The notes under the pieces were generated by a model. That model was not told the DNA's origin and searched no databases. It was given only the letters and a program-made list of their open reading frames with translations. From contig NIVC01003517.1 in the NCBI GenBank assembly GCA_002269645.1, forward strand, positions 1 to 64,000: a stretch of DNA of 64,000 nucleotides, read 5' to 3'. Source of the DNA: Macrostomum lignano. Taxonomy: Eukaryota. A program made the translations under genes and the position numbers. Positions 29,001 to 59,451 of this stretch are shown piece after piece (within the stretch, counting starts at the first letter, position 1; each line of letters starts with the position of its first letter).

Positions 29001-30683
29001 CTCCTCGCTTAGCAACCAGAGAAAGGCGCTCTCCTGACCCTCTGGCAGACGTGTCTCGTTGGCAGCCGCGCAGTGAACGGCGGTGCGACCTTCGGCATCG
29101 CGCCAAGTGAAGCACTCGTCGCCAAGACGGTTTCGGATGGACCGAAGGCAATCCGCACCCTGTTATTCATAATGATAATAATAACTGATTGCATCTGCCT
29201 CAATTGAGCCGGATGTGCAACCGACAGCTCAGCCGCAGCTATTGCGCGACGCATTTGAAGGCTGCGTACGGCTGTTCAGTCCAAGGACTGGGGGGTCGCC
29301 ACACACACCCTCAATTGCCCCAGCTAATGCTGGCACCCATTTTACAGCTGGGTGAACTGAAGCAATGCAGAGTTATGTGTCTTGCTCAAGAACACAAATT
29401 GTTTCGAGTGCGATTGGGAATCGAACCCCCGACCTTTCAGTTGTTAGTCCGATGCTCTAACCACTAGGCGGATACCTCCTCAGTTGTTCAACAAGTTCGC
29501 AGCAAAGATTCATTTGAATAAAACTGTATCAGGAATGCTTTTGCCTGCCTGTCGCCATCAGTCAGCCTGCCGCCTTATACTACAAAAAAGGTGCTTCTAA
29601 GGTGACCTGTTGAATACGTAGATATAGAAAGAGTTCTACGATTGATAAAGTTTAATTTATTGTATATTTGACTCCGCATCACTGATTGCTCATAGAAAAG
29701 CGGTTTTTTGGCAATAAAGCAATAAAATACTGCTATCGAGTAAGTAACACCTGTTATGAAATAAAGCGGAAATTCACCTGAAACCAAGCCGCCAGATGAA
29801 TTGGGGAATTTTTCTTCTCGTCCCTCTCTTTGAGACAGTCAGGAGTCAGCTGCTTGACGAACCAGTCCAGCGCGTCAGGAGAGTTTCGATTTTTGGCCGC
29901 GTACATCACGGCAGTCCGGCCGAGGAAGCCCTTTCGCAGGAAGCCGTCCAGTTTGCCCAGTTGCTTCTTCGCCATCTCCAGTAGCTGCACGCTTCGCTTC
30001 TCGGCGCACGCGTGCAAAGCGTTCGTGTTGCTGATGTTGCCCAAGATGAAGATCTCCTTTGGCAGGTTGTTCAGCATCCATTTGAATGTCGTCTCGTTTG
30101 GATTGTGCGCTGCGTAATACGCCACGGATCGTTTCGAGTCGTCTAGAGCTTTGAAGCAGTCTTCTCCACAGAGTCTCTTCATCAACTGCATCGCGCTGCT
30201 GTCCAGCTTCCAGGCGGCGAGATGAACCGGTGTAGCACCCGATCGAGTCCTGCTAGTCATGTACTCAACTCCGAATGAATCCGCCAGTATTTCGAATGTC
30301 TTGCACACAACAGCTGGGTCCTTTGTGCTATCGACTGCCGCCATGTGAGCAAGATTCCAGCCCTGCTCAGGGTCAGTCTCATCAGCTAAAGTGCGTTCTC
30401 CTTGTCCTTTTCCTTTTCGTACTTTGCTGTGATTCTTTACTGAAACGCCTGTTCTGGGCGGCAGCAGGCGTTCCAGTGCGATGTTGTCCCCATCGGCAAT
30501 GCATTGAACTGCCCGATTGAAAAGTTCTTTCAGATCTGCGTCTTCTGGCTTTGGCGAAATCTGAACTGACGCCGAACCGCTCGCGCCTCGACGCAGTGAT
30601 TCCGAGTCCACGAGGGTGCCCCCGTAAGGATTCGTGGCAACAAATGACGCCGTGGTTTCTGCTTTAATTGTGGTTCCGGTCAT
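23012..30683 (-). CDS. Ankyrin-repeat TRP channel with TRPM-type S1-S6/TRP module, about 1416 aa
   Basis: Exons 30683-29778, 29159-28833, 28220-27615, 26885-25186, 24998-24680, 23404-23012; phases 0,0,0,2,0 match. About 14 ankyrin-like motifs; IGPKVSML, FLLILAVMIFSFGVFFLVLLYP, NIVMWNLLIALFS, IWRKTSYD...VLPLPLSLL; C-terminal coiled coil. Confidence 0.8.
23520..23800. repeat. 21 bp minisatellite (CACTCACCAACAGACAGTGG-type) in the last TRP intron
   Basis: Visible tandem units; related array at 24383-24505. Confidence 0.9.
24383..24505. repeat. 22 bp minisatellite (CAGACAGTGGCACTCTCACTTT) related to 23520-23800
   Basis: Visible tandem units. Confidence 0.88.
27135..27360 (+). mobile_element. 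Diverged SINE-like repeat (family 2)
   Basis: B-box-like TTCGATTCC followed by blocks (GCACGAAAATTGGCC, ATGAGGGGCCAATCCCCAAAGCACAG, TCAGGGCCACTGTACACCCTGT) shared with 40240-40445. Confidence 0.55.
29210..29478 (-). mobile_element. tRNA-derived CORE-like SINE (family 1), second copy
   Basis: Reverse-complement homologue of 9439-9690, inside TRP intron 1. Confidence 0.8.
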
Positions 30684-33248: not shown

Positions 33249-35028
33249 ATGTCCGAGCGTCGAGCGATAAAGTGCGTTGCAGTCGGCGACGGAGCCGTGG
33301 GAAAAACCAGCCTGCTGATCTCCTACAGCACCGGCCAGTTCCCCAGCGATTACGTGCCCACCGTGTTCGAGTCGTACGCCGTTGACGTTGACATCGGCGG
33401 CCGGACCTGGACGCTGGGCCTGTTTGACACGGCTGGGCAGGAGGGCTTCGATCACGTAGGTTTCTAGGATTGCTAATTCTGGTGCTGTGCTGGCGCCTGT
33501 GGTGCTGGCGCCTCTGGTGCTGGCGCCTCTGGTGCTGGCGCCTCTGGTGCTGGCGCCTCTGGTGCTGGCGCCTCTGGTGCTGGCGCCTCTGGTGCTGGCG
33601 CCTCTGGTGCTGGCGCCTCTGGTGCTGGCGCCTCTGGTGCTGGCGCCTCTGGTGCTGGCGCCTCTGGTGCTGGCGCCTCTGGTGCTGGCGCCTCTGGTGC
33701 TGGCGCCTCTGGTGCTGGCGCCTCTGGTGCTGGCGCCTCTGGTGCTGGCGCCTCTGGTGCTGGCGCCTCTGGTGCTGGCGCCTCTGGTGCTGGCGCCTCT
33801 GGTGCTGGCGCCTCTGGTGCTGGCGCCTCTGGTGCTGGCGCCTCTGGTGCTGGCGCCTCTGGTGCTGGCGCCCCTGGTGCTGGCGCCTCTGGTGCTGGCG
33901 CCTCTGGTGCTGGCGCCTCTGGTGCTGGCGCCTCTGGTGCTGGCGCCTCTGGTGCTGGCGCCTCTGGTGCTGGCGCCTCTGGTGCTGGCGCCTCTGGTAG
34001 TTTCTCTCGTCTCTTTGTTTTTGTTAGCTACCTGTACATGCACCCGCCACTGCAGAAACTGTCACCAGTCACGTGACTTTAACACAATTAGCTTTCTTTA
34101 CATGTAGCACTGAGTTCGTAAATGGTCGAATGTGTAAGCCTAGCAAACTGCTGATAACCCCCCCCCTCTAGGTGCGCACTCTCTCCTACCACAAAACGGA
34201 CGTCTTCCTGGTTTGCTTCTCACTCGTCAATGACGCTTCGTATCACAACGTTCGCGAGCTCTGGGTGCGCGACATCCGACGCAATTCGCCACGCTGTCCC
34301 ATCGTGCTGGTTGGCACGCAGCTGGATCTTCGCTCGGCCTCAGACCGGCCGGTGGTCACCCACGAGATGGGACGCCGGCTTGGCTGTCGGATTAAGGCTG
34401 CCAAATATGTGGAGTGCTCCGCAATGACTGGGGTGAGTTGCGCTTCTGGTCTACGACGCTTGCTAGCCTGTTACTAGCTAGCCTGGCATTAGCTAGCCTG
34501 GCATTAGCTAGCCTGGCATTAGCTAGCCTGGCATTAGCTGGCCTGGCATTAGCTAGCCTGGCATTAGCTAGCCTGGCATTAGCTAGCCTGGCATTAGCTA
34601 GCCTGGCATTAGCTAGCCTGGCATTAGCTAGCCTGGCATTAGCTAGCCTGGCATTAGCTAGCCTGGCATTAGCTAGCCTGGCATTAGCTAGCCTGGCATT
34701 AGCTAGCCTGGCATTAGCTAGCCTGGCATTAGCTAGCCTGGCATTAGCTAGCCTGGCATTAGCTAGCCTGTCATTAGTGCCTTGTGTGCACTGTGATTGA
34801 TTGCTTTGAATACACTTAGGCTAAGTGCTTTGCATGCCAGCGCTACCCACATGAAATTCCGTATAAGCTGCTATAGATTGCTTTATTAACAATGAAAATG
34901 CTTCTGCTCACCCGCTATGATCATACAAACCACCGCAGGAGAACGTGAACACGGTGTTTCAAGAGGTGATCCTGGCTGCCACTCAACACAACCGAAGCAA
35001 GTTGAACAGCGCGTGCGACCTGCTCTGA
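33249..35028 (+). CDS. Rho-family small GTPase, Cdc42-like, 185 aa
   Basis: Exons 33249-33455, 34172-34432, 34939-35028 (all phase 0); [31 protein letters not shown]-terminal CAAX CDLL. Confidence 0.93.
33480..33997. repeat. 15 bp minisatellite (GGTGCTGGCGCCTCT)n in Rho intron 1
   Basis: About 34 almost perfect units. Confidence 0.98.
34474..34775. repeat. 15 bp minisatellite (ATTAGCTAGCCTGGC)n in Rho intron 2
   Basis: About 20 almost perfect units. Confidence 0.98.
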
Positions 35029-36276: not shown

Positions 36277-36861
36277 GCCAAATGAGAGACATGACGCACC
36301 AAATGAGAGTCATGAGACACCAAATGAGAGTCATGAGACACCAAATGAGAGTCATGAGACACCAAATGAGAGTCATGAGACACCAAATGAGAGTCATGAG
36401 ACACCAAATGAGAGTCATGAGACACCAAATGAGAGTCATGAGACACCAAATGAGAGTCATGAGACACCAAATGAGAGTCGTCATGGGACACCAAATGAGA
36501 GTCATGGGACACCAAATGAGAGTCATGAGACACCAAATGAGAGTCATGAGACACCAAATGAGAGTCGTCATGGGACACCAAATGAGAGTCATGGGACACC
36601 AAATGAGAGTCATGAGACACCAAATGATCGAGAGTCATGAGACACCAAATGAGAGTCATGAGACACCAAATGATCGAGAGTCATGAGACACCAAATGAGA
36701 GTCATGAGACACCAACTGAGAGTCATGAGGCACCTAATGAGAGTCATGAGACACCAACTGAGAGTCATGAGGCACCAAATGAGAGTCATGAGAAACCTAA
36801 TGAGAGTCATGAGACACCAAATGAGAGTCATGAGACACCAAATGAGAGTCATGAGACACCA
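36277..36861. repeat. 21 bp minisatellite (GAGACACCAAATGAGAGTCAT)n
   Basis: Visible tandem units with occasional 24-bp variants. Confidence 0.97.
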
Positions 36862-37539
36862 AAGGAGAAAATCACAGCAAGTGAATTCCAATCGATGTCA
36901 ACCAATTAAGGTAACAATTTTGGCTCAGCATTAGCCCCGCAAAAATCCCATTTTCAATCCGGGAATTGATGGGAAATCCACGGCGCTGATTATTCCCAAA
37001 GGGCTGGCAAGTGTTTTCCCCACCTCTCAGGCGAATAATAATTTATCCCCCAGGTCCGCTGAGTTGGGAAAGATTTCCCACCGGCTGGGTGGATGCCGCA
37101 AAGTGTCGAAGTTATAAAGTGTTCTGCTGCCTCTGATTTATTGCTCAAATAAAAACGCTTGATAGGGAGAGCATTTTTGCTTTCTTTGGCTCTCAGGGAA
37201 GTTTTTCTGGAGCAATTTATTGGGAAATATAAAGCATCGCACATTGGGTGGAAAATGACTCAGCCAATGATGCAGCCATAGGCCTTGGAGCAGATGCCTT
37301 GAGCATTGATAAATTTCATATCTAAGCATAGTTTAATAATTTAGTTCTGGTTTCAAACCTTAAAAGACTCTTTGTTCAACAAAGGCAATTTTTTATCAAG
37401 CTGAAATGCAGCAGGTTTTCGATGAGAAAAAATCAGCGTCTGGTCGAAGTTCGCGCGGTTTTGGATTTCTCAGCCAGCCACGAAAATCGAAAAGTTTCAC
37501 GTCCGGCTTCAATGGCCGCGGCGGGGTGAGTGTTGGAGG

Positions 37540-38180
37540 CGCTTGTGTGTGTGTTGGGGGCGCCGTGTGTGTGTTGGGGGCGCCGTGTGTGTGTGTTGGG
37601 GGCGACGTCTGTGTGTGTTGGGGGCGCCGTGTGTGTGTTGGGGGCGACGTCTGTGTGTGTTGGGGGCGCCGTGTGTGTGTTGGGGGCGCCGTGTGTGTGT
37701 TGGGGGCGCCGTGTGTGTGTTGGGGGCGCCGTGTGTGTGTTGGGGGCGCCGTGTGTGTGTTGGGGGCGCCGTGTGTGTGTTGGGGGCGCCGTGTGTGTGT
37801 TGGGGGCGCCGTGTGTGTGTTGGGGGCGCCGTGTGTGTGTTGGGGCGCCGTGTGTGTGTTGGGGGCGCCGTGTGTGTGTTGGGGGCGACATCTGTGTGTG
37901 TGTGTTGGGGGCGACGTCTGTGTGTGTGTTGGGGGCGACATCTGTGTGTGTGTGTTGGGGGCGCCGTGTGTGTGTTTTGGGGGCGCCGTGTTTGTGTTGG
38001 GGGCGCCGTGTGTGTGTTGTGGGCGCCGTGTGTGTGTTGGGGGCGCCGTATGTGTGTTAGTGGCGCCGTAAGTGTTAATGGCGCCGTCTGTTTGTTGGGG
38101 GCGCCGTGTGTGTGTTGGGGGCGCTGTATGTGTGTTAGTGGCGCCGTAAGTGTTAATGGCGCCGTCTGTGTGTTGGGGGC
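37540..38180. repeat. 20-24 bp GT-rich minisatellite (GGGGCGCCGTGTGTGTGTTG)n
   Basis: Visible tandem units. Confidence 0.96.
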
Positions 38181-38189
38181 GGTTTTGGT

Positions 38190-38447
38190 GTTGGGCGCCA
38201 TTTAGAGTGTTGGGGCGCCATTTAGAGTGTTGGGGGGGCGGTTTTGGTGTTGGGCGCCATTTAGAGTGTTGGGGCGCCATTTAAAGTCCCTGGGGCGCCA
38301 TTTAGAGTATTGGGGCGCCATTTAGAGTGTTGGGGTGCCATTTAGAGTGCTGGGCGCCATTTAAAGTGCTGGGCGCCATTTAGAGAGTTGGGGCGCCATT
38401 TAGAGTATTGGGGCGCCATTTAAAGTATTTGGGGTGCCATTTAGAGA
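38190..38447. repeat. 20 bp minisatellite (GGGGCGCCATTTAGAGTGTT)n
   Basis: Visible tandem units directly following the GT-rich array. Confidence 0.93.
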
Positions 38448-38917
38448 GTTAGTTTGCGGTCCAGTATGCTTATTTCTCTGTCGCTCAGACTATCCAGCGA
38501 GTATATACTCAAATATCAAAGTGCAGTGCAGTGCAAGGAAACTCAAGCAAATGGGAAAAAGGCAGAGTTGCAGGATTTATGCGACAAACTGGGAAGAAAG
38601 TGTTGCTCCCAAAACAGACTCATCAGTCAGCTGGTATGGAGTCCCGAAAGAGATTCGTGTTTTTTCTCTCCTAGAAATTGGGAATAACATTCTGGTTGCT
38701 GTAGACAGAATTAATTGGGAGATGCTTTTTGCCTGCTTGACTTTGCTTGCGGTTTTTCGTCTTGACTGCCACTTTTTTGTGCGGATCGGCCAGACAAACA
38801 CTGAGAGAGTGTTGTGTAAGTGTGACAGCCACTGCTCACTTGCTCAGGACATCATTCGCTTGACTGTTAAAGCTAAGAGTAATTTATGGATATCTTCAGC
38901 ACAGGAATCCATGGGAG

Positions 38918-39235
38918 ATGAGGATCTCACTCCCTAATCTATCAGAGATTAGGATCTCACTCTCTAATCTATCAGAGAGTAGGGTCTCACTCCCTAATCT
39001 ATCAGAGAGTAGGGTCTCACTCTCTAATCTATCAGAGATTAGGATCTCACTCTCTAATCTATCAGAGAGTAGGATCTCACTCCCTAATCTATCAGAGAGT
39101 AGGGTCTCACTCTCTAATCTATCAGAGAGTAGGATCTCACTCCCTAATCTATCAGAGAGTAGGGTCTCACTCTAATCTAGTAGAGATTAGGATCTCACTC
39201 CCTAATCTATCAGAGATTAGGATCTCACTTTCTAA
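38918..39235. repeat. 30 bp minisatellite (GATCTCACTCCCTAATCTATCAGAGAGTAG)n
   Basis: Visible tandem units. Confidence 0.95.
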
Positions 39236-39298
39236 TCGATGAGAGATGAATTAAGATTTCATTCCATGAGAGATAGGTAAGATTTCACTACCTAATCC

Positions 39299-42200
39299 AT
39301 GAGATGTTCCGAAATCTCAGCCGTCCAATTTTCTCCGCAGCTGGCGGGCCATTTCGAAGGCATCAACCAGCTGGACAGACTTCGCTCACGGGCAATCGAT
39401 AAAATGCTGGTGGCCGATCAAGAGGCCAAGAAGCGAGAGGTGCAGCTGCTGATAATTGGTGAGTCGGGAGAGGCAGGAGACTCAGATGACAAAACTGCCT
39501 GACCTTCTGCTGCAAGACGAATCCCAGGGCTTGAAACAGGTTTTCACAATTAACCCCCACCTGAAGGGGAGCTGAAGATCAGCTTTGTAATTGTCTGTTT
39601 ATCTGTGTACTAACCGCGGCCAACTCCGCTTAACTTGACTGGAAAAGTTCAATTAGCGTAATTTTAAAATAGGATGTGTTAAACTCGATACGTCCCCTTG
39701 TTCTGTTTGAGAGATTGTCAACTTTAATAAAAAGTTCCTTTTTTGCAAGAGATCTGAGGCGCAGTAGTCGTCTTTTGAGTCTACAGAGAGACTTTGCGAA
39801 AGAAAATTATTGTTAAAAGAACTGACACGAAATGTAGAAAGATTTTCGTGCTTAAAAATGTATTGATCTTTTTATATTCGTAGGCCGCAGCCTTGTGACC
39901 CGCGAATTCTTTATTGCACTCCGTGCCCCGTCGCAATGACCGCACGCAGGGACCGCCGAGGTTGAGTTAAAAAAAAAACTCTACAAATAAAAAAGCTGAA
40001 CTGGCTACGCACGAAGTGAGCGGGGTTCAGAGGGGAAGAATTGGTAAAGTCATTCCTGTCTGACGTTTTTGTCCTCTTTCTCATAGACTGATTGCACAGG
40101 TCCTAGTTCCAATGATTGATAAAATTTCGACAGTCCCAGGCAGATAAAAGTTAAGGACAGAGACCAGGTTCTGATGATGGACCAGACGTCAATTAAAGTC
40201 GAATATTAAAATGTCTCTAAAAGTGGCTCTGTAGACTCCGTAGGGGTAGAGCAGCTCAGTAGGGGTGGACTCAGGGTTGGAGTCCGGTCCCTGGATCGAT
40301 TCCGTGCGCGAAAATTTGCCAGGAGGTTGTCGTCTGACGCACCATCATGAGGGCCAACCCCAAGGCACAGGGAGTGCACATACGTGAAAATTAGAACTCA
40401 GGGCCGCTGCACACCCTGTATGAGCGTGTGTATCTTCGCGCCTAAAGTTCTTTGCGGTTAAGTAACAACTAACTGGACACAAACGTGTCAGAAACTTCAA
40501 CCGTTCTGTACGCGTTTTTGTCCGGCTTGACTTTTTGTTGTGGTTTTGTAATTGCGTCGACAAATGGGGACTCTTACTGTTCATAAAGCCTGTGAAAACA
40601 ATGCTGGCACGAAGCACACTCAAAATCACTGGTTTCTAAGCCAATCTACCCCCGAGTCTCTTCACTCATCTCTCTCAACAGGCGGCACGGGCAGCGGCAA
40701 AAGCACGCTGGTCCGACAGATGCGGATCCACCACGGCGACGCGTTTCCGGACGAGAAGCGGCGGCGACTGGCCGACAGAGTGCTGGAGAACCTGGCCGAC
40801 GGAGTGCAGATTGTCCTGGAGAATATGCGGTCCAGGGACTGCTGGTTCAAGGACGAATATGTCAGGGTACAAACTGTGCACGTTGCAGTCAAGCCTATGT
40901 CCACATGCTTTCAGTAGCTATGCAATAATTCAATTAATAATTAACGATCAAGTTTCATTTTCAAAGCGAAGGCTTAAGGGGCTTAAAAGGACAGATAAAG
41001 GAGGCGAGGGGAATACCCGTATCTCCTGGTTGAAAACTACGTGTCTTTTTGTAGAAGCAGACATAAGCTTAGGGCAATACTAAAAAAATTGAAACAGATT
41101 ATAGAGAGAAAACCATCCTTCTCTCCGAGTTGATTGAAAAATGCTCGGCATCAGAAATTGATGAATGTCATAAAATGCTTGATTAATGCTAATTCGTGTC
41201 AGTGAATACGTTACAGAAGTTACAGGTCTCTTAGTATGCAGCCAATTGTATTCCTATAAGTTTTCGATCTTAGTCTAAAACTGCTTTCCTAATGAGAAGA
41301 CTAAAGCAATAATCTTGATGCCCTGTGCCGCCCTGTGCCGAATCTCCTGTTACCATTGCACACAAGTTCGAGTAATTCACTAGTAGATTAACTGCTACAT
41401 GCATTTGACACTCGCACAATAGTTGTTTGCTATGAATTGCTGGTCTAATTACTCAAAAGGATTATTCTCACTCGTTCCCATCCAGGACATGGCTGCGGAG
41501 TTCCTGGCGCACTGCCCCCGCTTCAACCGCTGCATCTTCCGGGTGCCGAACCGACTTGAAAACATCGCCGACAGCATCCATTATGCCCGCGTCGAATTCG
41601 CCGACGCTGGCATCGAGGACGAGAAAGATGAAGACTCCGACAGCGAGGAGCAGTTGGAAGCCGATCATAACGATGATAGCGGAAACTGCCAGCGTAGACG
41701 TCGACAGCATCGTCGCGGACTTTGCCAGCTTGTTGAGGCGGAAGAGATTGATGACCCCGACGGTGGACCAGGCCGTATGAAAGGTTCCGAGTCACCTTCG
41801 TTGATCTTCTACTACGATTTGCAGGTCAAGGAACCTTTAGATAATGCTGGTGCTACCGATAGCGTCGAAAACCCGTCATTGACAACCAGCAACTCGCTGA
41901 ACTCCCGCTCCTTGGCGCCCAGTTACGTCAGTACGCTCGACTTTGCGTCATTGCGTCGAAAGCTGGACGCTTTGGCGGCGGAAAAAACGCCACGGAAGGC
42001 GCGGGTGGGCCGCGGCACGGACGGCACTACCGTGGCGAAGTACTTCGTGCGTCATCTGAAGAACATCACGGCGCAACCGGAGTTCGAGGAATGTCTTCTT
42101 GACGCTGAATATTTTAGACCAGAAATCACCTATGCTGAGATTTAGTAAGTGTTGCTGTCTTTTTTTATCGAAATTGCGCCAGATAAACTGTGTAGTTTTG

Positions 42201-43745
42201 AACTTCTGAGGCTCTTACGAGCGAAACTTTGGTGCTCGTTGGTCAAACGACCAAACTGTGATGATCATTAGTCAAACTTTGATGCTGTTAATCAAGTTTT
42301 AAACGTCGCCTGTAAAGCTTTGAGTCTGTGGGGTAGATAAAAAAACAATTTTCTTTTAAAAAATAATTATGAGTAATAGCTTTGATATCTATTAACCTTC
42401 CTATTGCGATACACATTAATTCGATTTCTTCTTCAGTTTCATTCGTCACGTGGACCGGCTAATCCAAGAGGATTATACGCCCAGCCTGCAGGACATCCTA
42501 GCCATACGACGGCCGAATCACGCCGTAAAGGAGGCGAGCTTTTCAATTAGCGGTTGCTCGTTTAGGTAAGCCAATTTAAGAGAAGTTCAGGTTGTTCCCG
42601 AAAATTCTAACCCTTACCATATTAGCATATATTTCAATTCTTCTCAATGTTCTTCAATGTTTCCTATCGGCGTGATAGGAAAACATCTTTTCCAATGTTT
42701 GAAAAGATAGGAAAGCCGATCGCTCTTTGCAAACTTTACGAAATATTCAGAATCATCGACTTGGCCGATTACCGACGCCAGCGCTGTCGCTGGCTGCACT
42801 ACTTCGAAGACGTCAGCGCGGTGCTGTTCGTGGCGTCGCTGACCGGCTTCTCCGAGCTGATTGAGGACGGCGATAGAATCGTGAGTCAAATCGTCTTGTG
42901 ACAGAAAATTTATCTAAAATGTTCGTCTAAATTACCTTTTTTATTCTTTCCAGACCGTAAAAATGACCGAATGCCTAAGGCTATTCGGCGAAGTGGCTAG
43001 TAGCAAGCACCTGTGGAAGAAGGACCTATTTCTGTTTCTAAATAAGTTGGATCTGTTCGAGAAGGCGCTGCAGAAGAAGAGCATTGCTGGCCTATTTCCC
43101 GATTATCGAGGTCAGAAAATGAGCAGATTTTATTTTGAAACATATTACTCTTGTTTGTGGGAAATAAATTCTGTAGGCTCCAACTGTAGGATATTTTGCA
43201 ATTCTCACTGAGAAACATGATGTGCGGATGTACCGAGCTTCAGGTTATAAATGATACAAAAGTTACGTGAAATGGTTGCAATTTCAGTAGAAAGTAAGAA
43301 AAGGACGTTGAGGTGTTGGTTCGAAGGAGGCATTTTGCAGCTGACACAAATCAAGGTGGCAGTGAACCCACAGCCACCGAGGAAGACATGCAGTTGTGCG
43401 TACCACAACTCTCCCATCGTCATCCATGTACATGCAGGCTCTGTCTTGTAGGTTGACTTGACTACGTGTCCGGGATCCGGTACGTCAACCTGTATTTCAG
43501 TCCATTTTATCTGTAGCTCTGCATAATCCCCAACTTCTCATCCAGGCCGCGACGATGTGTCAGAGAGCAGTCAATTCATCAAGGAAAAGTTCCTCAGCCT
43601 GCTGCCAAAGAATCTACCCAAGTCGAAGCGTGTATTCGCCCACGTAGTGAGCGCTATCGACATCGAGGGCATGCGAAAAATTTTCGGCGAGGTGCTTCGC
43701 AAACTTGCCGAGGCCAATTTGAAAAGGAGCCTGCACGTGTTCTGA
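39299..43745 (+). CDS. Atypical heterotrimeric G protein alpha subunit, about 540 aa; N-terminal exon uncertain
   Basis: Exons 39299(or 39341)-39458, 40682-40866, 41486-42144, 42437-42565, 42751-42880, 42954-43110, 43546-43745; phases 1,0,2,2,0,1 match. RSRAIDKML, LLIIGGTGSGKST, RWLHYFEDV, LFLNKLDLF, AHVVSAID. Confidence 0.88.
40240..40445 (+). mobile_element. SINE-like repeat (family 2) in G-alpha intron 1
   Basis: tRNA-like head (TAGAGCAGCTCAGTAGG ... GGATCGATTCC) and body blocks shared with 27135-27360. Confidence 0.55.
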
Positions 43746-45759: not shown

Positions 45760-48700
45760 TTAAACTTCGGTACTGACGCACTGCACAACCGCCTGTGCAG
45801 CCTGCACGGCCAGTATCGCCTTCTCCCGATTCGAAATCTCCGACAGATCCAACGCCCGACCGTTGCGCTCGTCCACGAAGACGCTCGCCAGCTGTGAGAC
45901 GTGATCCAACACGGTCAGCGTCAGATCGGTGTCCGAGATGCAGCACAGATGCTGGCTCAGCTGCTGTTGACGATCTACTGCTTTACCCTGCTTTGTCAGC
46001 AACGCCTTCAGCGCCTTCTCCGCTGCCTGCCAGCTGATGAAGCTGGCCCATTCGAACTCGCCCGCTTCGATCCATCGCTCTGCTGAGCGCAGTTTTGTCT
46101 CTGCAGTTTCCAGGCACTTTTCTGCACTGTCGGCTGAAGCTCGGCCAGCACTGGAGCCTTCGGAGAAGTGCAGCCCGCCGCCTGCGACGCCTCCGCCGTG
46201 GCGTCTCAACCAACTGATGACGACCTCTTCAGCAGTGAATATGAGGCGACACCTGGCTACTCGCTCAGCCTGCTGCTGCCAATCATCAATGAACTCAGGG
46301 AACTGGTGAGTCCAGTTGTGCTCAGCAGCGAATGATTTTATCTGTTCAAATGAATTAGCAGTACTTGAGTAGTGTGTCAGAGTCCGTTGGAGCACTTGAC
46401 GCTGTTTTTCGGTCGGCAGCGAAGCTGCACTGCTCAACAGATGGTCAATGGACGCTCTGACATCAGTGTTTCCATGTGGAACCGATGAATAAACTGAAGC
46501 TGGTTGCTTCTCGAGTAAGAACAGCTCAGCTGTCGTGGCTTTGACGTGAGCACTTTCGCCAGCGTCAATGATGTACTCACTGGTCCATGGATTCTCGACT
46601 TCAACAGGGAGCTTCTCCAGTACTTTGGCGTACACAAAGCATCCGTACTTATCCTTGTAAGCCACAGTTTTGCTCACTAGGTCTATCGGCTTTGCTGGCA
46701 GATGCCTGAGCAGGCAGTTTTTAAGCTGTGGCAAAGCCTGGCCAATCAAGGAAGCGCCCATGGTACTTAGCTCCATGCTCTTCTGACCCTTCACTTTGTG
46801 CAGAGAAACTTTACGCTTTTCCAAAACTTTCAGCATACCTTCGGGACTGTCCATCAGAAGCACAATTGTCAAATGATTTCCATGCTCCGGTGATATTTTG
46901 AAGCCATTCTGTAAAACTTTCTGAACGATATCCACAAAGTCCATCTGCCAAAGCATTCCCTTACTACCGCTGAGGTGTTCAGGGATGGCTGCATGGCTCA
47001 TAAGAATCTTTCGTTCTTGCAGCAGAAAGTTCTTGTCTTCAGCTGAGTCGCGTTGCTCGACACCGTCAAACTGCAGGCAGGTCCGCAGCTCCGACAGGCA
47101 GACAACCGAAAATCGGGACAGAAGAGAAGAGAGAGAAGCAAAAACTTCATCACCTTTGACGGACAAGTCTTTCGAATCGTGCAGAATGATGCTAGTGATG
47201 CACTGGAGCAGCACTGGGTGCCTCAGCTTAGCTTGAAGATTGCATCGGGCTGCACAGTTTTCCCCAGCGCTGCACCGATCGCTGACCTCCGTCAGCAGCT
47301 TCTCGCTCACATTCTCGCTCAGTCCTTTGAGCCCCAAGTCGGCTGCGAGGCTGAAGTACAGCCTGCGCAAACTGTCACTGCCCAGCTCGCAGAAGCTGAG
47401 ATCGAGAAATTTGACACACTTAGATTCCGCTAGCCTCTTCTGGTAGCCGTCCGAGTCGTTGATTGTGAGCTTCTGGCAGTCCACCAGCTCGAACTCGGTA
47501 TCTATTGCGTCCTGGAAGTCGTCAGGTAGCACCAGTTTAGTAGGTAGGAATAGTGTTTTTGTGGACTCAAATTTCAGCTTTCCGCCTTGTTCTAATAAAC
47601 CGATCATTGTGGTCAGGCATCGGTGAACGGAAATAAGCTGATTTTCAGTTAGATAATATTGCTGATGCTGTTCGTCGTGAATGAGCTCCAGGACCAGCCT
47701 CAGTTGCTCCAATGTTGCTGATTTGGTGGCTCCCAACTTAGTAAACAGATTTAAATGACATCTGAAATCACCTGGACAGACCTGGATGTACGGTGGCACC
47801 GAGGTTTTTTCTTCGAATGTGATTCTGTTTGGAGTGACGAAGCACGGGTCCCATCTAGGGCCTGTGAAAATGCAAGGAATTTTTCTCAAACGTGCAATCA
47901 CATTTCCCATTTTGGCACTGTTCATCCCCGTCAGATGTTCATAAATAGAGCTCATGGTCTTGAGCCTTAAACTCGCAGCAGTGTCGTGCATTCTAGATGA
48001 AGTGAATGCTTCGTTGGACAAAATGTTCTGCAGATGACGCTCAAAAGCCTCATCGGAAACAGTCTTCATGGACTTATTTAAGCAAGGTCCGCAGTCAAGA
48101 CAAGCGTACGACTCAACAGTCCAACAAAGGTAACGTGAGCTAAATTTTACGCACTGGGAGGGACTTTTCATGCAAACAGCATCGCCTGGACAAAGACTGT
48201 GTAGGTCCTTGTCGTCATTCGCTACTAAAAATGGAATCTGAGATAGTTTCTGGACAAATTTATCTGTTAGATGCGTCCGAAAGCCCACACTGTCGATAAA
48301 ATTCAGCAGCATTTTCGATCTGTTTTTAAGATCATCAGAAATGCCAACAGCCCCTTCAGTGCTGATGTCATTGGCAAACTTAATAACAGTATCAGCTGAG
48401 CACTCGGTGATTAAGCCAGCATGGAGCATCAGCTGTCTCCAACGGCCACACTGGAACCGCTCTGGCAGAAAGTTTTCCGAATCCAAAGTTTGTTTGAATA
48501 TAAATACCGTGTGATCATAAAACGTATTAGCCCTCTTCCAGCCGCATTGTGTCGGAATGATACTTGCTTCCTGTAGAGAGCTTTCGAGTTCCTTAAGTTT
48601 TGAGATTCATCTGATTCATAAACGGAATTCGATCAAAGTTTCTGCTCATTTCGCAGAGTTTCTCTAAATGCTTCTCTCGAGTTGGGTCGGACAATTTAGA

Positions 48701-51700
48701 GAAGGCAGGAAGGATGAAGTTTGCGTAGACTTCAGGTTCCGATATTTCATCGCATTTTAGTTTACTGTACAGTGATCTGAGTGCGGTGTTGTCCTTCAGG
48801 AAGATGGCCTGGCTGGAGCTCTTCCACTCGTCCATCTCGTCGGCAACGAGCGTCGCCGGCAAGATGCAGGCCTGCTCACAGTTGAGCGCTCGGCAGTGAC
48901 CGTCAGAAGTGACGAACACGGGCCACTTTCGCAACCGTTCCAGAATGTTTTTCTCGCCTTGATTTTCACTTAGCTGCCGCCAATGATTTTGAATGTACTG
49001 GAGAAAGATCACAGCTTCCTCTTCCGTAGCTGAAGTTCTTTCGGGATTTTCAGTCAGAGCGAATTCAATCACTCGAAGCATTGACTCGTGCCTCTGGAAG
49101 TTGCCGCATAGTTTTTCAACAAGCTTTAGGCTGGACATACTAAGCATTGGAGCATTCAGCTTCCGAAGAGACTTCTCGACGGCTAAGCTGTAGTCATCGA
49201 GACCATCAACTTGGACGACAGGCGCGTAAACACACGAGGCCCGTGATATGCTAACTAGACGATGCTCATTGACAGGAACCAGATGAGCATTTTTGAGCCC
49301 GGCAGACACTAGAGAATGCAGCGGGTCTTTTTGATTCGGGCAGCTGAGATTGAAAAAGTCCCACGCTCGAATGAGCCAATTTTCCAGAGCCTCTGTGTCC
49401 ATGCCCAGGTGCATGGGCGCGTAAATGTTTTCTGCGCTAAAGATTTCACTGTTTTCTTTGCGTAATATGTTGCAGAAATCCGTCACTTGAAATTCTCTTA
49501 CAAGATTCAACGCTTTTAGTCTGTCAATCTCAGCTTTAGAAAGACCAGAAATGAATGTTTTGTGCACAAACTCTTGCTTAGATTCTGTGTGCATAAACAA
49601 GTCGAAATATTCCGTAAAGAAGAGTCCTTTGTCTCCGGATTGAAACAATGACAGCTGTCCTCCAGAACTTAAATTTAGAGGCGCTCCATTCAAATTAGTC
49701 GACTTTGTTTCCAACAAATACTTGATAAACTTCAAGACGGTTTCAGGCCGCTCGAAAGGAGTCTGCTCTACATCAATTGGAACAGAGGCTCGCAATGCTG
49801 CACAGACTGGGCCGTTGAGAAACGCAATGATTGATGAAGCATCCGCGAGCAGGATGGAATCCAGTTTGCTGGACCTCAGCGATTCTACCAGTTGCCGTTT
49901 TTCGGACAAAACGAGCGGGAACTTCAATTTGTAAAGAATCTGCTTTATTGGATCTTTTAGATCGCCTGCAGCGAGAAATACAGCGTCCCATCGACTTCGC
50001 TCAAGCGCTGTGCAAGTGGAAGCCACTTCAAAGTCTGCGGCTGCTCACTTGTAGCTGGAAATATTTTCAGTCGGTTTCTAAACGCATTCTGGAAAAAGGC
50101 CTTTGCAAGCTCGTCAAAGAATGTCATGCCTTTTTCATGACAATCTGGGAGAAGCTTAAAATACTCAGGCACACTGGATTCAGTTAATACAAAGGTCCTT
50201 GCTGTTTCTAGAATACTTCCATAGCATTCAGGTAGCAGCTGCGTGGCCAACATGCGGTTCCATTGTTCCTTATAGTCAGCATTTCCGCTCGCTTTCCAAA
50301 GAGATCTTCGCGACGGGTCCAGAATGAAGTGACCGTTCACGTGAACAGGCAGCCCAGTGGTCACTGGCAGTGGAAGCAGGCAGTAGGCACGGCCCTTCAC
50401 TGCTGATGTTGCTGCTGACTCAGGTAAAAGAGCGGCTACTCCGGTTTTTGGAAGAAGACCCCAATTTCCTGTAAACACTTCCTTTTGCACTTTATCCGGA
50501 ACAGTGATGTTGCTACTGCTCAGCTTTTGACAAACCAGCCACTTGAATTTTGAGTCTACAGCCTCACCCGTACAAGTTGTGGTGAGCTCATAAGTTACTG
50601 AGCTGATTGGAAGAGCATCAAGCCTGATTCCTTTAGTCATTAAACTTTGACTGGCCACTTCGCATTTATTCTTGAAATCGTCCAAGCCTTCTTTAGAATC
50701 TGGCAGCCTGTCTGCTTGGACTCTTACGGTGTAGAGCGTATTGAGAACGCCGTCCTGCGATACTTCACTAAGCTTTACCTCCTTGACATTAACCAGAAAC
50801 AAAACTGCTTGTTCCAGTTCTTCTTTTGCCAACTGCTCATCAAATAGCGTCTTGATTTCGTTTGCATCCACAACCTTTTGGCAAATCTTTGATTGATTTG
50901 AAAACCTCAGTGGTAGACGGAAAACAGTACCTCCTTCCTGCTGCAAATGTTCTGGAAGGTATCCAGCAAATACATCCGTAAATGTTTCTTTCAGATTCTC
51001 TAACTCCTTGAACATTCCTCCAGGAGTAGCGGCCGTCGCACCAGGCATGTACTTGCAGTGCGGATCCATCACACACAGTACTTTGCCGTCAGAAAGAAAT
51101 GACGGCGCGTCAGTAATATTGTAGACACAGTTGAACCCAATTCCGTAATTCCCTGCTTTCCACAACTCGTCACGCTTGGATCCAACGCCGAGATCCTGGA
51201 TGCCTTCAATGTCAGCATCGGAGAATGTCGAGTCGTTATAGACGAGTAGCGCAGGTCCCTGTAGCTCCTTCCAGTTGTCGCTCAAAACTCGTTCGGTTCC
51301 GTGATGCCGATGATCGATGATGAAGCTGATCGTCGATGATCCCGCGTCATCCGCATTCTGGATGAGTTCTTTGAAGAGTTCGCTGCCGAATGGATAGCCG
51401 GACAGAATGCTCTTCAGTCTAGTCGTGAGATCCTCATGCTGACCAAATGGCAGCGGCCTCATCGCCTGCGATATCATGCTCTCGCGCTGGCTCCGGATGC
51501 CAAGCTTTTCGCACAGATCGAATGACAAAGTTTGGTGACAGAAGTAAGTGCCATCTGCTAGCTGGGCAATGTCCATCCACGGAATGTTATTGAAGCATAG
51601 CTGGCTACATGGCCTCAAGACGCCAGTCTTATCTGGGGCGAGAAGCTGGTTCACATGTTGATATTTCTCTTCAGAGTTCACAATTTTATAGAGTAGACTC

Positions 51701-54639
51701 AAGCTCAGTTTCAGATCATCATCTGACAGATGTGTTGATGCGCGTTGCTGAGCCAAATTTCCGAGAGCCGACACAAAATGCTTGGTTTTAAATTTCGAGA
51801 GAACTCCTGCTGCCTTGAAGAAGGGCATGAATGCTTCGTCGATCAACTCTGGTGAGAGCTTAAACAAGAACGGCGGAAAATCAGTGTCTAATTTCCACAT
51901 TGATACCTGAGTCGGCCTTCGGAATCCATGAGGTGACCAGATTACGTTGGGTACCTGCTTTATCAGGTTAGTCACATCTGGTTGGGTAATGCCCTTTTCA
52001 GAGAGCTTTTGACTAAAATATCTGTAGACGCACTGGCTGACTTTGAGTGTTTCTTGGTTGGTCTCTCTCGTATTAATCACTGTGACTAATTGCTGCCATG
52101 CAACTCCATGCGTGACCTTATTATATCGCAGTGCACCTATCGACTTCAGTAGCTCTAGTCTTGCGTTCTGTTCAACTTTGCTAAAAATAGATTCGTCTAT
52201 AACCAACTGTGAAGCTGATACCAAATCTTTGCAATTCGGAGTGTACAGCTTGTCTGGCTGGAAAAGTTCACCTGGTGGATATTTATCGGACTGCCAATTA
52301 AAGCAGCAGTCTTGTGGCTTCTGCATAGCAGGTAAGAACTTAACACTTTTGAGTTGTTCGAACGGATACCTAAATTTCCTATTAAGAAGCGACCCTAGGT
52401 AAGACAGCAATACCTTTGTTCGCTCTTCTCTGTGTGGCTCAGCCAGGGCAGTAAGCGACTCTGCTCGACGCATCACTTCCGTCCACAATAAGTCTTCGCG
52501 CATGCCAATCAGCCGTAGAGCCTTCAGCCGGTCCTCTGTCCTGAGGTCGCTGTGCGGAAATATCGGATCTTCAGAATCAAAAAGACGCGCGGCGAGACAC
52601 TTTTGATCCAGAATTTCGGACGGCTTACACAATGCATTATTGGCATTCGGAATGCAGCAGTACTTTTCTAGAGCATTTTCAACAATTTTTGTCGCAGTCT
52701 TTGACGCTGACTTCAATTCTCTGCGCTCATCTTGGCAGATTTCATCTAGAATGAACTTCAGTGCTCCGAAGCAGTCCTTAGAGTAGCTCGACTTCCACAA
52801 GCGAGACATGTTCGGCACCAAATTAAGCAGCAGTGTCTCGCCCGACCACTGACGCTGCAGAATCTTGTTCGTCAGTCCCAGCTGCTCCACAGTTCGTCGA
52901 ACTCCATCGGTCAACGATGCGACACCTTCGTGCTGACCAACGAGTCTCGTGGCGAGTCGACTCAAACAATCTGAAATCCCACCCAGTGACAGGATGCTGG
53001 GATCCAGAAACACTGTGTGACCAAAACTCTTCCACCCAGCTGATGTGTGAAAGATTGGCGCCTGACCGTCAAGCAGGGAAGCATAAAACTTCTCAATAAG
53101 CGGCCTCCACACAGACTGAGTAGCTCTGTCGAATCGAGGCCACAGCTCTTGCGAAATCTCTGCATTCACCAAAGACATTCCACTTAGAATCTTCAGAGCG
53201 TCGATGTAGACAGGACAAATGACGTCAGTGAGCAGCACTCGGTTCCACTCGCCGAGACTCCACACGCCCTGCTTCTCGTCGACCGTGACCTCGTTGAGGT
53301 GTCGTCGGCTCGAGGTGACGGAGAAGCTCGCGTTCAGCATCACCGGAAATGGATTTTCGACAGGCAGCGGTAGGAAACAGAACAGCAGCGAGGCCGGCTG
53401 TGTGTCACGTGAAAGCGGCACGATCCTGTGAGACTGCTCGACGGGCAGCGCCACAGCTCCCACAGGCGCCAGTCCGAGACGACGCTGCTCCAACGCGACA
53501 GCGAGCGACTGTCCAGTGCCGACAGCAGCGCACACGAGCCACACTCTGGTGGAGGCGACAGTGCTGATCTGAAACTGATCTTGAGCTGAGTCTCCAAGCT
53601 GAACCTCCACCTCGACAGTCGCTTGACAGCGATGCTCTTGATTTTTCTCTGGCCCTCCTTGAGTAGCAGATTCGATCAGAGCTTCGGCTACCTTGAGAAT
53701 AGAGCTCTGAGCAGCGAACTCTTGATCCGCTTGTGACATTCCTGATATTGGCAGCGGTGGCAGTGCAATGGCATGTCGCTGGAAATATTTGAGAGGGCTC
53801 TTGTGAACGCAGAACACGAGTTGAGTTTGCTTTGAAGGATCGGTCGCATTGGACGGCAGGAACAGACACCGGAATGTTCGCACTGTCTGGGTGAACAGGA
53901 GCATAGTGTCAGCTTGCTCTGCAACCAGTCTCAACAAGCCACGAATCTCCGAGTCAGAGTACACGCGATCGCAGATCTTCGACTTCGCTGCCTGAGCCTC
54001 AGTGCGCAGTGGAAGACGCAGCAGCGTGCCGGCGAAGTTTCCTTCATCTGCTTTCAAATTGCAGCCTGAGACTCCAGCGAACGGTGCAAACTGGTTGGCG
54101 TACTGATCCAGCCATCTCGGCTGTGCTTGAAAGTCGAGCTCAACTCCAGTGTCCCTGTCCCCGTGACTCGCGTACACCGCCTCCAAGTAGCCCTCGCCCC
54201 TGCGCTCACCATGCGGGTCGAGAATCAGCATTCGGTGTCGACTGAGGATCTGCGGCACGTCAGTCAGGTTGTACACCGAGTTGAAGCCCAGACCGAAGCG
54301 ACCGACCTTGGCCGTCTTCTCCAGCTTGGTGGCTCCGCTCAGCTGCAGGATGTTGTCAAAGTCCTCGTCGCTGAAGGTGGCGTTGTTGAAGGCCCACAGC
54401 GCCCGTCCCTGACAGTCGGCCATCGCCGCGTCGAGCAACGACTCGGAGCCGCGCCAGTCGGAGTTCTCGCGACAGTCGTAGAGCAGCGTGACCTCGGTGG
54501 CGCCCGCGTCGTCAGCGTTCTGCAGCAGCTCCTTGGGCACCGCGAGACCGTCAGAGTACTCGTCGAGCAGTCGCTTGAGTCGTCGGGTGAGTGGCTCAGA
54601 CTGGCCGCGCAGGCGCAGGCCGTCGGAGGTCTGGGCCAT
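45760..54639 (-). CDS. Sacsin-like protein (two sacsin repeat regions, degenerate J-like region, C-terminal HEPN), about 3000 aa, interrupted by two frameshifts
   Basis: GQSEPLTRRLKRLL..ELLQNADDAGA and FGQHEDLTTRLKSIL..ELIQNADDAGS (GHKL-type repeats); HEPN FEWASFISWQAAEKALKALL. ORFs 49957-54750, 48593-50026 and 45760-48486 are consecutive. Probable ATG at 54639 after an acceptor at 54649. Confidence 0.88.
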
Positions 54640-54744
54640 TCTGGAGGCCTGTGCGTAAAATTTTTGGAGGGGGTTGAACTGGGATTGAAATACATGAAAA
54701 TGCATGAGTTGCATGGACGCTTTTGAACCCCATGAACCACAAAA

Positions 54745-55120
54745 TCTCAAAAAGCAGACCCCAAAATCTCAAACAGCAGACCCCAAAATCTCAAACAGCA
54801 GACCCCAAAATCTTAAACAGCAGACCCCAGTCCCTCCTCAGCAGACCCCAGTCCCTCGCTCAGCAGACCCTAGTCCCTCCGACAGCAGACCCCAGTCCCT
54901 CCCTCAACAGACCCCAGTCCCTCCCTCAGCAGACCCTAGTTCCTCGCTCAGCAGACCCCAGTCCCTCCGACAGCAGACCCCAGTCCCTCCCTCAACAGAC
55001 CCCAGTCCCTCCCTCAACAGACCCCAGTCCCTCCCTCAACAGACCCCAGTCCCTCCCTCAGCAGACCCCAGTCCCTCCGGCAGCAGACCCCAGTCCCTCC
55101 GACAGCAGATCCCAGTCCCT
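54745..55120. repeat. About 21 bp minisatellite (CAGCAGACCCCAGTCCCTCCC-type) upstream of the sacsin-like exon
   Basis: Visible tandem units grading from CAGACCCCAAAATCTCAAA to CAGACCCCAGTCCCTC. Confidence 0.93.
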
Positions 55121-57729: not shown

Positions 57730-58310
57730 TTTGTTCTAGCAGGCTGAAGAGGTCGTCATCAGTTGGTTGAGACGCCATGGCGGAGGCGTCGGCAGGCAGC
57801 CTGCTGCACTTCTCCGAAGGCTCCAGCGCTGGCCGAGCTTCAGCCGACAGTGCAGAAAAGTGCCGGGAAACTGCAGAGACAAAACTGCGCTCAGCAGAGC
57901 GATGGATCGAAGCGGGCGAGTTCGAATGGGCCAGCTTCATCAGCTGGCAGGCAGCGGAGAAGGCGCTGAAGGCGTTGCTGACAAAGCAGGGTAAAGCAGT
58001 GGATCGTCAACAGCAGCTGAGCCAGCACCTGTGCTGCATCTCTGACACCGATCTGATGCAGACCGAGTTGGATCACGTGTCACAGCTGGCGAGCGCCTTC
58101 GTAGACAAGCGCAGCGGTCGAGCCCTAGATTTGTCGGAGATTTCGAGTCGGGAACAGTGCGTCGCTACTGAAGCTTAGGAAGATCATGATTTCATCATCG
58201 CTCTTCTTTTTGTGGGGGTCGTGTGTTGACAGGTTTTTATTTTAGGTGCAATTTTCCTATGGTTTTAGTGGTCTAGCGATTTTAAGATTTCCATTTTGAG
58301 CGACGAATGC
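57730..58310 (+). pseudogene. Inverted duplicate of the sacsin-like HEPN-coding 3' end; open 133-aa ORF at 57777-58178
   Basis: Reverse-complement homologue of about 45640-46250, including sequence past the stop; in-frame loss of 13 codons near the C-terminus. Confidence 0.85.
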
Positions 58311-58647: not shown

Positions 58648-59451
58648 CTAGCTTGGAATCCCCAAGCGTTTGAAATTAAGTCTCTCCGGCGGCTTCCGCT
58701 CTCGCTTGGGTCGTTCAGCCATAGTCGGGTTTGTTGGAGTGCTGTCAGTGTCGGTCTCTTTGCTTCTTGGACTGGGCGCACGCCCCTCTTTGGTTGCATC
58801 ATCCAGGTTACCCAGTTCCGATGTGCTTGTAGGGATTTCCTGTGTGTCATCGGCAACAAGTCGTTCCTTCAGTTGCTCTCTGTGACAAAGCTTCCGCTTT
58901 CCCTGTTCTGTCCTAACCATGACTGTAGTCTCAGAATTGGGGAACCGTTCGCAGATGTTACCTGGCTCATCCAGAATTTCCTTGTCAGAATAGTTTCTGA
59001 TCCAAACATTTTCTCGTTGAAGATTTAAAATCGGTGATTTGAGTAGTCCACCCCTCATGATTTGAGCTGGGGCTAGACCTGTAGTCGGATGCTCTCGGTT
59101 TCGGTACTGCAGTAAGAATCTATTAACATCAGCTTGTAGGTCATTCGACGCTGAAGCTCTCAGGTGATTTTTCAGAGTCCTAACAAATCTTTCGGCGATT
59201 CCGTTTGAATTTGGGTGATATGGTGGTGTCTTGACATGCTTGCAGCCAATGTTATTTAGCCATTCCGTGAACTCGTGTGACGTGAATTGCAGTCCATTAT
59301 CTGAAACAAGCGTGTGTGGAATTCCCTCCTGGGCAAACGTTCGTTTCAGCCATCGAATAGTCTCTTCAGATGTTATTTTCTGCATCAAATGTACTTCCGG
59401 CCACTTTGAATAGGTGTCCACAAGCACCAAAGCGTAAGCACCAGTATTTAA
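58648..59451 (-). CDS. Gypsy integrase core and C-terminus
   Basis: LVLVDTYSKWPEV, LVSDNGLQFTS, TPPYHPNSNGIAERFVRTLK. Confidence 0.93.
   Translation of the reverse strand, partial: LNTGAYALVLVDTYSKWPEVHLMQKITSEETIRWLKRTFAQEGIPHTLVSDNGLQFTSHEFTEWLNNIGCKHVKTPPYHPNSNGIAERFVRTLKNHLRASASNDLQADVNRFLLQYRNREHPTTGLAPAQIMRGGLLKSPILNLQRENVWIRNYSDKEILDEPGNICERFPNSETTVMVRTEQGKRKLCHREQLKERLVADDTQEIPTSTSELGNLDDATKEGRAPSPRSKETDTDSTPTNPTMAERPKRERKPPERLNFKRLGIPS

Follow-up and report, generated by a model that had tools for sequence, protein, structure and literature searches.

The 64,000-nucleotide stretch examined here, referred to as the window, comprises positions 1 to 64,000 of contig NIVC01003517.1 of the flatworm Macrostomum lignano (assembly GCA_002269645.1). 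At 39299-43745 on the plus strand it contains a gene for a divergent homologue of the alpha subunits of heterotrimeric G-proteins (G-alphas). Seven exons were spliced by hand at AG/GT boundaries and produced an open reading frame (ORF) of 1,620 nt specifying a protein of 539 aa, termed here the G-alpha-like protein. The ORF stops with a TGA codon at 43745, which is the end coordinate given in a preliminary description of this locus. The exons and the main elements encoded by them are as follows.

39299-39458 (160 nt), plus strand: exon 1, with the ATG, the alphaN helix and the first base of the codon for P-loop Gly54; donor ATTG/gtgagt, phase 1
39383-39409, plus strand: alphaN core RSRAIDKML, in exon 1
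40682-40866 (185 nt), plus strand: exon 2, undivided, with the P-loop, alpha1 and alphaA
39458 plus 40682-40707, plus strand: P-loop GGTGSGKST, residues 54-62
41486-42144 (659 nt), plus strand: exon 3, helical domain with an insert
41588-42025, plus strand: insert of approximately 146 aa, residues 150-295
42437-42565 (129 nt), plus strand: exon 4, with alphaF, linker 2 and switch I RRPNHAV (42507-42527)
42751-42880 (130 nt), plus strand: exon 5, with G3 DLADY (42758-42772), beta4 and the start of switch III
42773-42811, plus strand: switch II helix RRQRCRWLHYFED, in exon 5
42954-43110 (157 nt), plus strand: exon 6, with alpha3, beta5, G4 NKLD (43041-43052) and alphaG
43546-43745 (200 nt), plus strand: exon 7, with alpha4, beta6, G5 VSAID (43647-43661), a divergent alpha5 tail ending in NLKRSLHVF, and the TGA

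All six introns are of the GT...AG type and have good polypyrimidine tracts; their phases are 1, 0, 2, 2, 0 and 1, with four of the introns interrupting a codon. No stops were present in the coding frame of the spliced sequence as compared to 21 and 23 in the other two frames, while in the introns stops were dense in every frame. The GC content at third codon positions (GC3) was 0.674 for the ORF relative to a GC content of 0.413 for the introns, and individual exons ranged from 0.47 to 0.63 while individual introns ranged from 0.30 to 0.45. The strength of this coding signature, namely the open frame and the GC3 value, makes a decayed pseudogene unlikely and, judged by these features, the locus is a real, intact coding gene.

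Residues 29-524 matched the Pfam family PF00503 (G-alpha) with an E value of 4.2e-68 and a score of 230 bits (cut-off, 48.8), covering positions 3-330 of the 333 positions in the profile. Matches to solved structures consisted of Gq, G11, Gi, Go, G13 and Gz chains (E values of about 6e-43 to 1e-38), with Gq/G11 chimeras scoring best and a chain labelled "dominant negative Go alpha" (7ts0_A) among them; each of these matches was in two stretches flanking the large insert. A Ras-like domain combined with a helical domain is, hence, an architecture common to this protein and the canonical Gi/Gq/Gv G-alphas.

Motifs and other residues were read by alignment to human GNAI1 and other G-alphas, and residue numbers such as T181 are those of GNAI1, for which Table S5 of PMC10078920 served to verify the reference sequence. 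In this numbering, the introns align to G40, after A101, Y154, K197, after M240 and G292. With PMC5896119 as the reference, all six positions and phases were those of the shared Gi/Gq/Gv architecture, and the earlier statement that the exon structure was intact and typical was, therefore, confirmed. Coding exons number seven in preGNAQ and eight in preGNAI, the difference falling within exon 2/3 (Lokits et al., PMC5896119). The presence of seven coding exons with an undivided exon 2 and conserved borders corresponds to the layout of the Gq/11 type. Exons 4 and 5, at 129 and 130 nt, have what we take to be the lengths of their counterparts in human GNAQ and GNAI. Sharing of the Gi/Gq/Gv intron positions, together with the Gq-like layout, indicated duplication at the DNA level rather than retrocopying; on this evidence the gene was copied from one of the Gi/Gq/Gv type and has a Gq-like layout of seven exons.

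The protein sequence did not point to a class. Identity was 24 to 31% to every G-alpha class over 347 trimmed columns, and the value for Gq (26 to 27%) was like those for Gi, Go, G12 and Gv. A G-alpha phylogeny had been proposed in the preliminary description as a check; in a neighbour-joining tree from these columns, the protein formed the longest branch and was placed outside all five classes with 1.5% support, such that no class was assigned. There was no clustering with Gq/11 sequences in this tree. As the branch is too long for sequence phylogeny to classify the protein, its class is given by the intron positions only. As a separate observation from neighbour-joining, G-alphas of Bradysia odoriphaga and of a dipteran Logan contig (P0002/P0005) grouped with zebrafish gnav1, suggesting that Gv-class genes are present in some flies.

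The alignment gave the following readings for the five nucleotide-binding motifs, all of which agreed with those of the preliminary description.

Residues 54-62, G1 (P-loop): GGTGSGKST in place of GAGESGKST; G42 changed to T and E43 to G; the pattern GxxxxGK[ST] is present
Residues 359-365, switch I: RRPNHAV in place of RVKTTGI; R178 kept (R359), with T181N, T182H and G183A; the pattern RxxTxGI is absent
Residues 381-385, G3: DLADY in place of DVGGQ; D200 kept, with G202A, G203D and Q204Y; the pattern DxxGQ is absent
Residues 451-454, G4: NKLD; the pattern NKxD is present
Residues 508-511, G5: VSAI in place of TCAT; A326 kept (A510), with the flanking Thr and Cys changed

The residue at G42, a Thr in the G-alpha-like protein, is the equivalent of Ras G12. 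By its fold and its gene structure the protein belongs to the G-alpha superfamily, although two motifs that define this family, switch I and G3, are missing. In order to place these changes against the variation among G-alphas, 73 alignment columns were considered in which 15 canonical metazoan G-alphas, drawn from all five classes, do not vary. Thirty-nine of these residues were kept and 34 were lost. The kept residues included all 11 chosen contacts to the base and to the alpha- and beta-phosphates (G40, S44, G45, K46, S47, T48, D200, N269, K270, D272 and A326) and, in addition, R178, E245 and four residues with structural or interface roles in switch II (R205, R208, W211 and F215). The losses took in the full set of gamma-phosphate and Mg sensors and catalytic helpers among these columns, namely E43, T181, G183, G202, G203 and Q204. 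With 53% retained overall, the chance of keeping 11 of 11 is roughly 0.53^11, or about 1e-3, a rough figure for a set that was chosen post hoc. The DVGGQ string is carried by 29 of the 30 additional homologues of G-alpha that were collected from animals, fungi and protists; this frequency and the invariance in the 15 references indicated that the replacements lie beyond ordinary variation. As compared to canonical G-alphas, the P-loop GxxxxGKS/T, the catalytic Arg, the Walker-B Asp, NKxD, W211 and F215 are retained, while T181, G202, G203, Q204, G42, E43 and G183 are replaced, an insert of approximately 146 aa is present and Gly2 is absent.

Divergence was unevenly distributed along the protein, as was apparent from the match of each region to canonical sequences and the conservation of that region among the canonical sequences themselves.

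alpha1: match 0.67, conservation 0.84
beta5 plus G4: match 0.63, conservation 0.90
beta1 plus P-loop: match 0.54, conservation 0.88
Switch II helix (alpha2): match 0.44, conservation 0.81
Switch I: match 0.21, conservation 0.72
G3/switch II loop: match 0.20, conservation 1.00
alpha5: match 0.20, conservation 0.63
Switch III: match 0.11, conservation 0.66

The nucleotide lid of the helical domain was also altered, from LNDSA in canonical proteins to ITYAE. When exon 7 (alpha4, beta6 and alpha5) was the query of an exhaustive phmmer search, no canonical G-alpha was detected at an E value of <= 1e-3 among 1.84 billion representative proteins, indicating that the receptor-coupling end has moved far from its ancestral form.

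In the "loaded spring" of GTPases, the gamma-phosphate is universally sensed by the Thr of switch I and the Gly of DxxG; the attacking water is positioned by the Gln and the Arg, and the Gly equivalent to Ras G12 has to stay small. With T181N, G203D, Q204Y and G42T, the G-alpha-like protein should probably neither switch nor hydrolyse GTP. The proposal that this is a "GTPase-dead or switch-locked" G-alpha was, hence, upheld as regards the replacement of sensor and catalytic residues, while the loss of hydrolysis and switching would follow from what is established for GTPase biochemistry. A guanine nucleotide is probably still held, and GDP most comfortably, due to the presence of an Asp at the Gly position that normally binds the gamma-phosphate (G203D). 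Insensitivity to RGS proteins would be expected from T182H and G183A, and the divergence of alpha5 makes canonical receptor coupling unlikely.

A working but unconventional GTPase switch would also retain a nucleotide-binding core, with catalysis being performed by N362, H363, Y385 or a bound GTPase-activating protein, as occurs in the HAS-GTPases and Rap, which are without the catalytic Gln. Such a switch would be consistent with the retained P-loop, catalytic Arg (R359), Walker-B Asp, NKLD and G5 Ala, and with an activation triad in which R208 and E245, two of its three members, are present. However, GTPases without the Gln retain the Thr of switch I and the Gly of DxxG. Here both have been lost (T181N and G203D), and the gamma-phosphate site is now faced by an acidic side chain. 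As switch III and alpha5 are also degraded, we consider a working switch of this type to be distinctly improbable.

Only one close relative was found in about 15 billion proteins, a fragment of 93 aa from M. lignano that is mislabelled "Transposase" (UniRef100_A0A1I8F8G0, here P0021). This fragment was detected by the exhaustive search with exon 7, in which it was the only match at E <= 1e-3 among the 1.84 billion representatives. It is approximately 65% identical to the G-alpha-like protein from alpha3 to beta6 (exons 6-7), with no indels in approximately 68 aa and mostly conservative replacements, and it reads across the same exon 6/7 junction. The two proteins share strings that are missing from canonical G-alphas (LWKKD, GLFPDYRG, IKEKF and PKNxPKSKR), while the G5/alpha5 region of P0021 is scrambled or truncated. 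A full-length search of a database of 5.8 billion clusters, in which low-complexity words from the insert saturated the candidate list, returned only canonical G-alphas with <=35% identity, and the same result was obtained with the C-terminal half. A profile of the G-alpha-like protein and P0021 detected nothing closer and added one chytrid protein, P0022, a hypothetical protein of Kappamyces sp. JEL0829. The candidacy of P0022 as the closest relative was rejected, as its high score arose artificially from a gene model that contains two G-alpha domains in tandem. Relatives were not found in a scan of metagenome contigs, exact look-ups of P0021 and of an ORF neighbouring the gene matched no contig, and neither a paralogue nor a pseudo-exon of the gene was found in the 64-kb window. 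Literature searches on animal pseudo-G-alphas yielded no directly relevant description.

The predicted N terminus reads MRC..., with an R in place of the Gly2 used for myristoylation; Cys3 is present and, to judge from its position, could be palmitoylated, although the 5' end of the gene is itself uncertain. An in-frame stop lies two codons 5' of the ATG. Two features bear on this region.

38921-39246, strand not assigned: 30-bp minisatellite of 10.9 copies (TRF), with degenerate copies running on to about 39330 and overlapping the ATG
39329-39341, plus strand: strong acceptor-like site ttttctccgcag/CTG read from the sequence, in frame and inside exon 1 (junction 39340/39341)

In Macrostomum, the spliced leader terminates in ATG (PMC10468722), and the site at 39340/39341 could be a candidate for trans-splicing of such a leader. 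Trans-splicing at 39341 would yield a protein starting MLAGHFEG... in which the P-loop Gly is residue 41, spaced as in canonical G-alphas; this shorter N terminus could be without either a Cys or a Gly as a lipid site. Five minisatellite arrays were observed 5' of the gene (33487-33998, 34462-34777, 36278-36868, 37526-38450 and 38921-39246), with periods of 15, 15, 21, 20/40 and 30 bp and 84 to 99% matches, and these occupy most of the upstream 6 kb. Several of the periods are multiples of three, resulting in long spurious ORFs in many frames.

The insert of the helical domain appears as a gap in the alignment and is without a counterpart in canonical G-alphas. Its residues include an acidic stretch (EDEKDEDSDSEEQLEADHNDD), the basic cluster RRRRQHRR and a tract rich in Ser and Asn, and its net charge is -11. 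In a charge-hydropathy plot, the insert fell on the disordered side of the boundary and both flanks fell on the folded side; the insert is, hence, predicted to be disordered. We speculate that it may recruit new partners or supply a polybasic or NLS-like signal. Exon 3 is 659 nt in length as compared to about 155 nt in canonical genes, a value that we take from human exon lengths, and the additional length is a multiple of three. The possibility that the insert is an unrecognised intron was set aside, as exon 3 contains no strong internal donor and has an exon-like GC content of 0.56, though the central GC3 is weak.

These features of exons 1 and 3 also raise the question of whether the gene model is partly wrong, such that the real protein, following trans-splicing at 39341, use of an upstream exon or removal of part of the insert, would be more ordinary. 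The strong in-frame acceptor in exon 1, the ATG ending of Macrostomum leaders, the excess of a multiple of three over the canonical exon 3 and the lower GC3 at the centre of the insert are all compatible with an error of this kind. None of these revisions, however, would touch the degenerate motifs, which are encoded by exons 2, 4, 5 and 7, and removal of part of exon 3 is opposed by the points just given on its donor and GC content. An incorrect model as the source of the divergence is, in our assessment, very doubtful.

On balance, we favour by some way short of certainty the interpretation that this gene encodes a functional, non-switching pseudo-GTPase that is a fast-evolved paralogue of G-alpha. 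Retention of an open frame despite approximately 27% identity to relatives would imply selection, as neutral drift would be expected to break it; maintenance of the gene by selection is supported indirectly by this frame, by the GC3 signature and by the pattern in which residues were retained. Several observations count against this interpretation. The NKxD box of P0021 is KQID, which weakens the proposal that GDP is still bound, as nucleotide binding may not be a conserved property of the family, and means that guanine recognition is not conserved across the two known members; the earlier claim that "guanine recognition is kept" is, hence, correct for the G-alpha-like gene, with its NKLD, but not for P0021, the one relative that was detected. 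In the alphaN helix, the match to canonical sequences is no more than 24%, such that binding of G-beta-gamma is far from assured. The coding signature is weak in the central part of the insert, where GC3 is only 0.43 to 0.55. Finally, the ATG and first codons lie inside a degenerate copy of the 30-bp minisatellite and approximately 6 kb of tandem repeats lie upstream, leaving the promoter and 5' end uncertain. The insert, the altered lid, the degradation of switch III and alpha5, the missing Gly2 and the location of the ATG in a minisatellite had all gone unmentioned in the preliminary description.

Some of these observations would be explained if the gene were on its way out, as an unexpressed or recently silenced duplicate whose ORF is still open yet functionless. 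A start codon inside a minisatellite, tandem arrays in the place of a promoter, the longest branch in the tree and the loss of 34 of 73 universally invariant residues would all be expected of such a duplicate, as would the absence of the protein from the 15-billion-protein collection, which includes proteins derived from transcriptomes, and the finding of a garbled 93-aa fragment as its only relative. Against this explanation, 539 codons in seven exons contain no stop or frameshift and are joined by six good pairs of splice sites, and GC3 is 0.67 as compared to 0.41 for GC in the introns. Retention was also non-random (11 of 11 of the chosen nucleotide-core residues versus 53% overall), the substitutions relative to P0021 are conservative and free of indels, and neutral divergence to approximately 27% identity would have ruined the frame. 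A silenced duplicate is, therefore, unlikely, though it deserves to be taken seriously.

If the protein is a functional non-switching pseudo-GTPase, then duplication would have been followed by very fast evolution into this form. We speculate that it would act as a constitutive binding protein, independent of nucleotide state, and that G-beta-gamma may be held through the retained alphaN core and the switch II helix. In canonical heterotrimer structures, alphaN and the switch II helix are the surfaces that contact G-beta. A role involving G-beta-gamma is plausible due to the moderate retention of these surfaces, namely the alphaN core RSxxIDxxL and residues R205, R208, W211, H213, F215 and E216; for a functional pseudo-GTPase with these residues, we would place the likelihood of a G-beta-gamma-binding role at about half. 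More tentatively, and with doubt prevailing, the gene and P0021 may represent a macrostomid, or perhaps wider flatworm, family of G-alpha-derived pseudo-GTPases that abandoned the GTP cycle and receptor coupling, gained a disordered, charged insert and became constitutive regulators of G-beta-gamma or new partners irrespective of nucleotide state. Such a family, if real, would be an independently evolved animal counterpart of the plant XLGs.

Plant XLGs are G-alpha homologues with approximately 30% identity to canonical proteins that are without the residues for hydrolysis and are largely nucleotide independent but still bind G-beta-gamma (bioRxiv 10.1101/795088). In XLG2, the P-loop Lys is lost, the catalytic Arg is changed to Glu, the G5 Ala to Gln, and an Arg/Lys is present at the catalytic Gln (bioRxiv 10.1101/795088). 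The G-alpha-like protein, in contrast, keeps K60, R359 and A510 and has a Tyr at the catalytic Gln. The XLGs also have a long N-terminal extension with a Cys-rich region and a nuclear localization signal (NLS), whereas the G-alpha-like protein is without such an extension and has instead an internal insert in its helical domain. By these comparisons, the two are analogues with independent origins and the G-alpha-like protein is not a member of the XLGs. The precedent of the XLGs, as invoked in the preliminary description, thus holds for a degenerate G-alpha analogue but is a loose one, since the Lys, Arg and Ala lost in XLG2 are all kept here.

Engineered changes at the equivalents of G203, G42 and Q204 generate dominant-negative or hydrolysis-defective proteins. 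In dominant-negative G-alphas of the G203A type, which serve to stabilise complexes with receptors, alteration of the DxxG Gly blocks the conformational change driven by GTP and the release of G-beta-gamma. These engineered proteins keep alpha5, switch I and receptor competence, whereas alpha5 and all three switches have diverged in the G-alpha-like protein. By analogy, its nearest functional counterparts would be the XLGs of plants and engineered dominant negatives of the G203A type. In the chytrid protein P0022, two tandem atypical G-alphas are fused, with a G3 of DVSGL, a switch I without the catalytic Arg and a retained NKKD; this protein is approximately 31% identical to the G-alpha-like protein, and hence no closer than canonical forms, and differs in keeping the second G3 glycine. 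P0022 is, in its own right, an independent natural example of a degenerate G-alpha.

Divergent G-alpha paralogues specific to one lineage are not rare. There are 26 G-alpha genes in Schmidtea mediterranea, including one G-alpha-x and ten G-alpha-like genes, and flatworms carry many G-alpha homologues that are unclassifiable or truncated (PMC10078920). The characteristic strings of the G-alpha-like protein were not found in the supplementary sequences of PMC10078920. By its sequence, the M. lignano locus is a naturally degenerate G-alpha in an animal. G-alphas are among the most conserved switches of animals, and the residues replaced here are invariant across five metazoan classes. If this gene is naturally maintained, then animals, like plants, can put the G-alpha fold to use independently of the GTP cycle, and the protein would show, as a natural experiment, whether activities such as G-beta-gamma binding, membrane targeting and scaffolding of partners persist once switching is lost. 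The locus is also a warning for annotation, as a "7-exon Gq-like" gene model is not necessarily a working G-protein.

The window as a whole has a GC content of about 45% and abundant tandem repeats and long terminal repeat (LTR) elements; the M. lignano genome consists of 15% simple or tandem repeats and 21% LTR elements (PMC5730564). These properties, like the single match to P0021, fit an origin in a macrostomid flatworm or a near relative. No Rfam families or tRNAs were found in the 64 kb. Intron 1 of the G-alpha-like gene contains a tRNA-like stretch at 40245-40315 with a B-box-like sequence, GGATCGATTCC, which may be a remnant of a short interspersed element (SINE); this stretch was not matched by ARAGORN or Rfam, and its 3' part (40289-40310) has a single occurrence in the window. 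The remaining features are as follows.

2058-9082, plus strand: two tandem copies of one gene that encodes ankyrin repeats and, after these, a split protein-kinase domain (Ank, Pkinase)
9725-10840 and 14666-15373, plus strand: duplicated ApoL-like ORFs (PF05461, E value 8e-10), near-identical over about 235 aa
14151-14579 and 18889-20208, minus strand: second duplicated pair of ORFs, with no known identity
24485-30683, minus strand: ankyrin-repeat ORFs adjoining a 577-aa multi-pass membrane-like ORF without a Pfam match
45760-54750, minus strand: very long sacsin-like ORFs (SACS domain, E value 9e-144; C-terminal HEPN), directly downstream of the G-alpha-like gene
57777-58178, plus strand: near-identical copy of the HEPN end of the sacsin-like ORFs
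58648-63633, minus strand: pol and gag ORFs of an LTR retrotransposon (integrase, RNase H, reverse transcriptase and gag)
60223-60924, plus strand: unannotated ORF of 233 aa between the pol and gag ORFs

The ORFs at 24485-30683 may constitute a divergent gene for a TRP-like channel. Each of the ApoL-like ORFs is followed by a coding-looking minisatellite, at 11805-12229 and 16276-17109, respectively.

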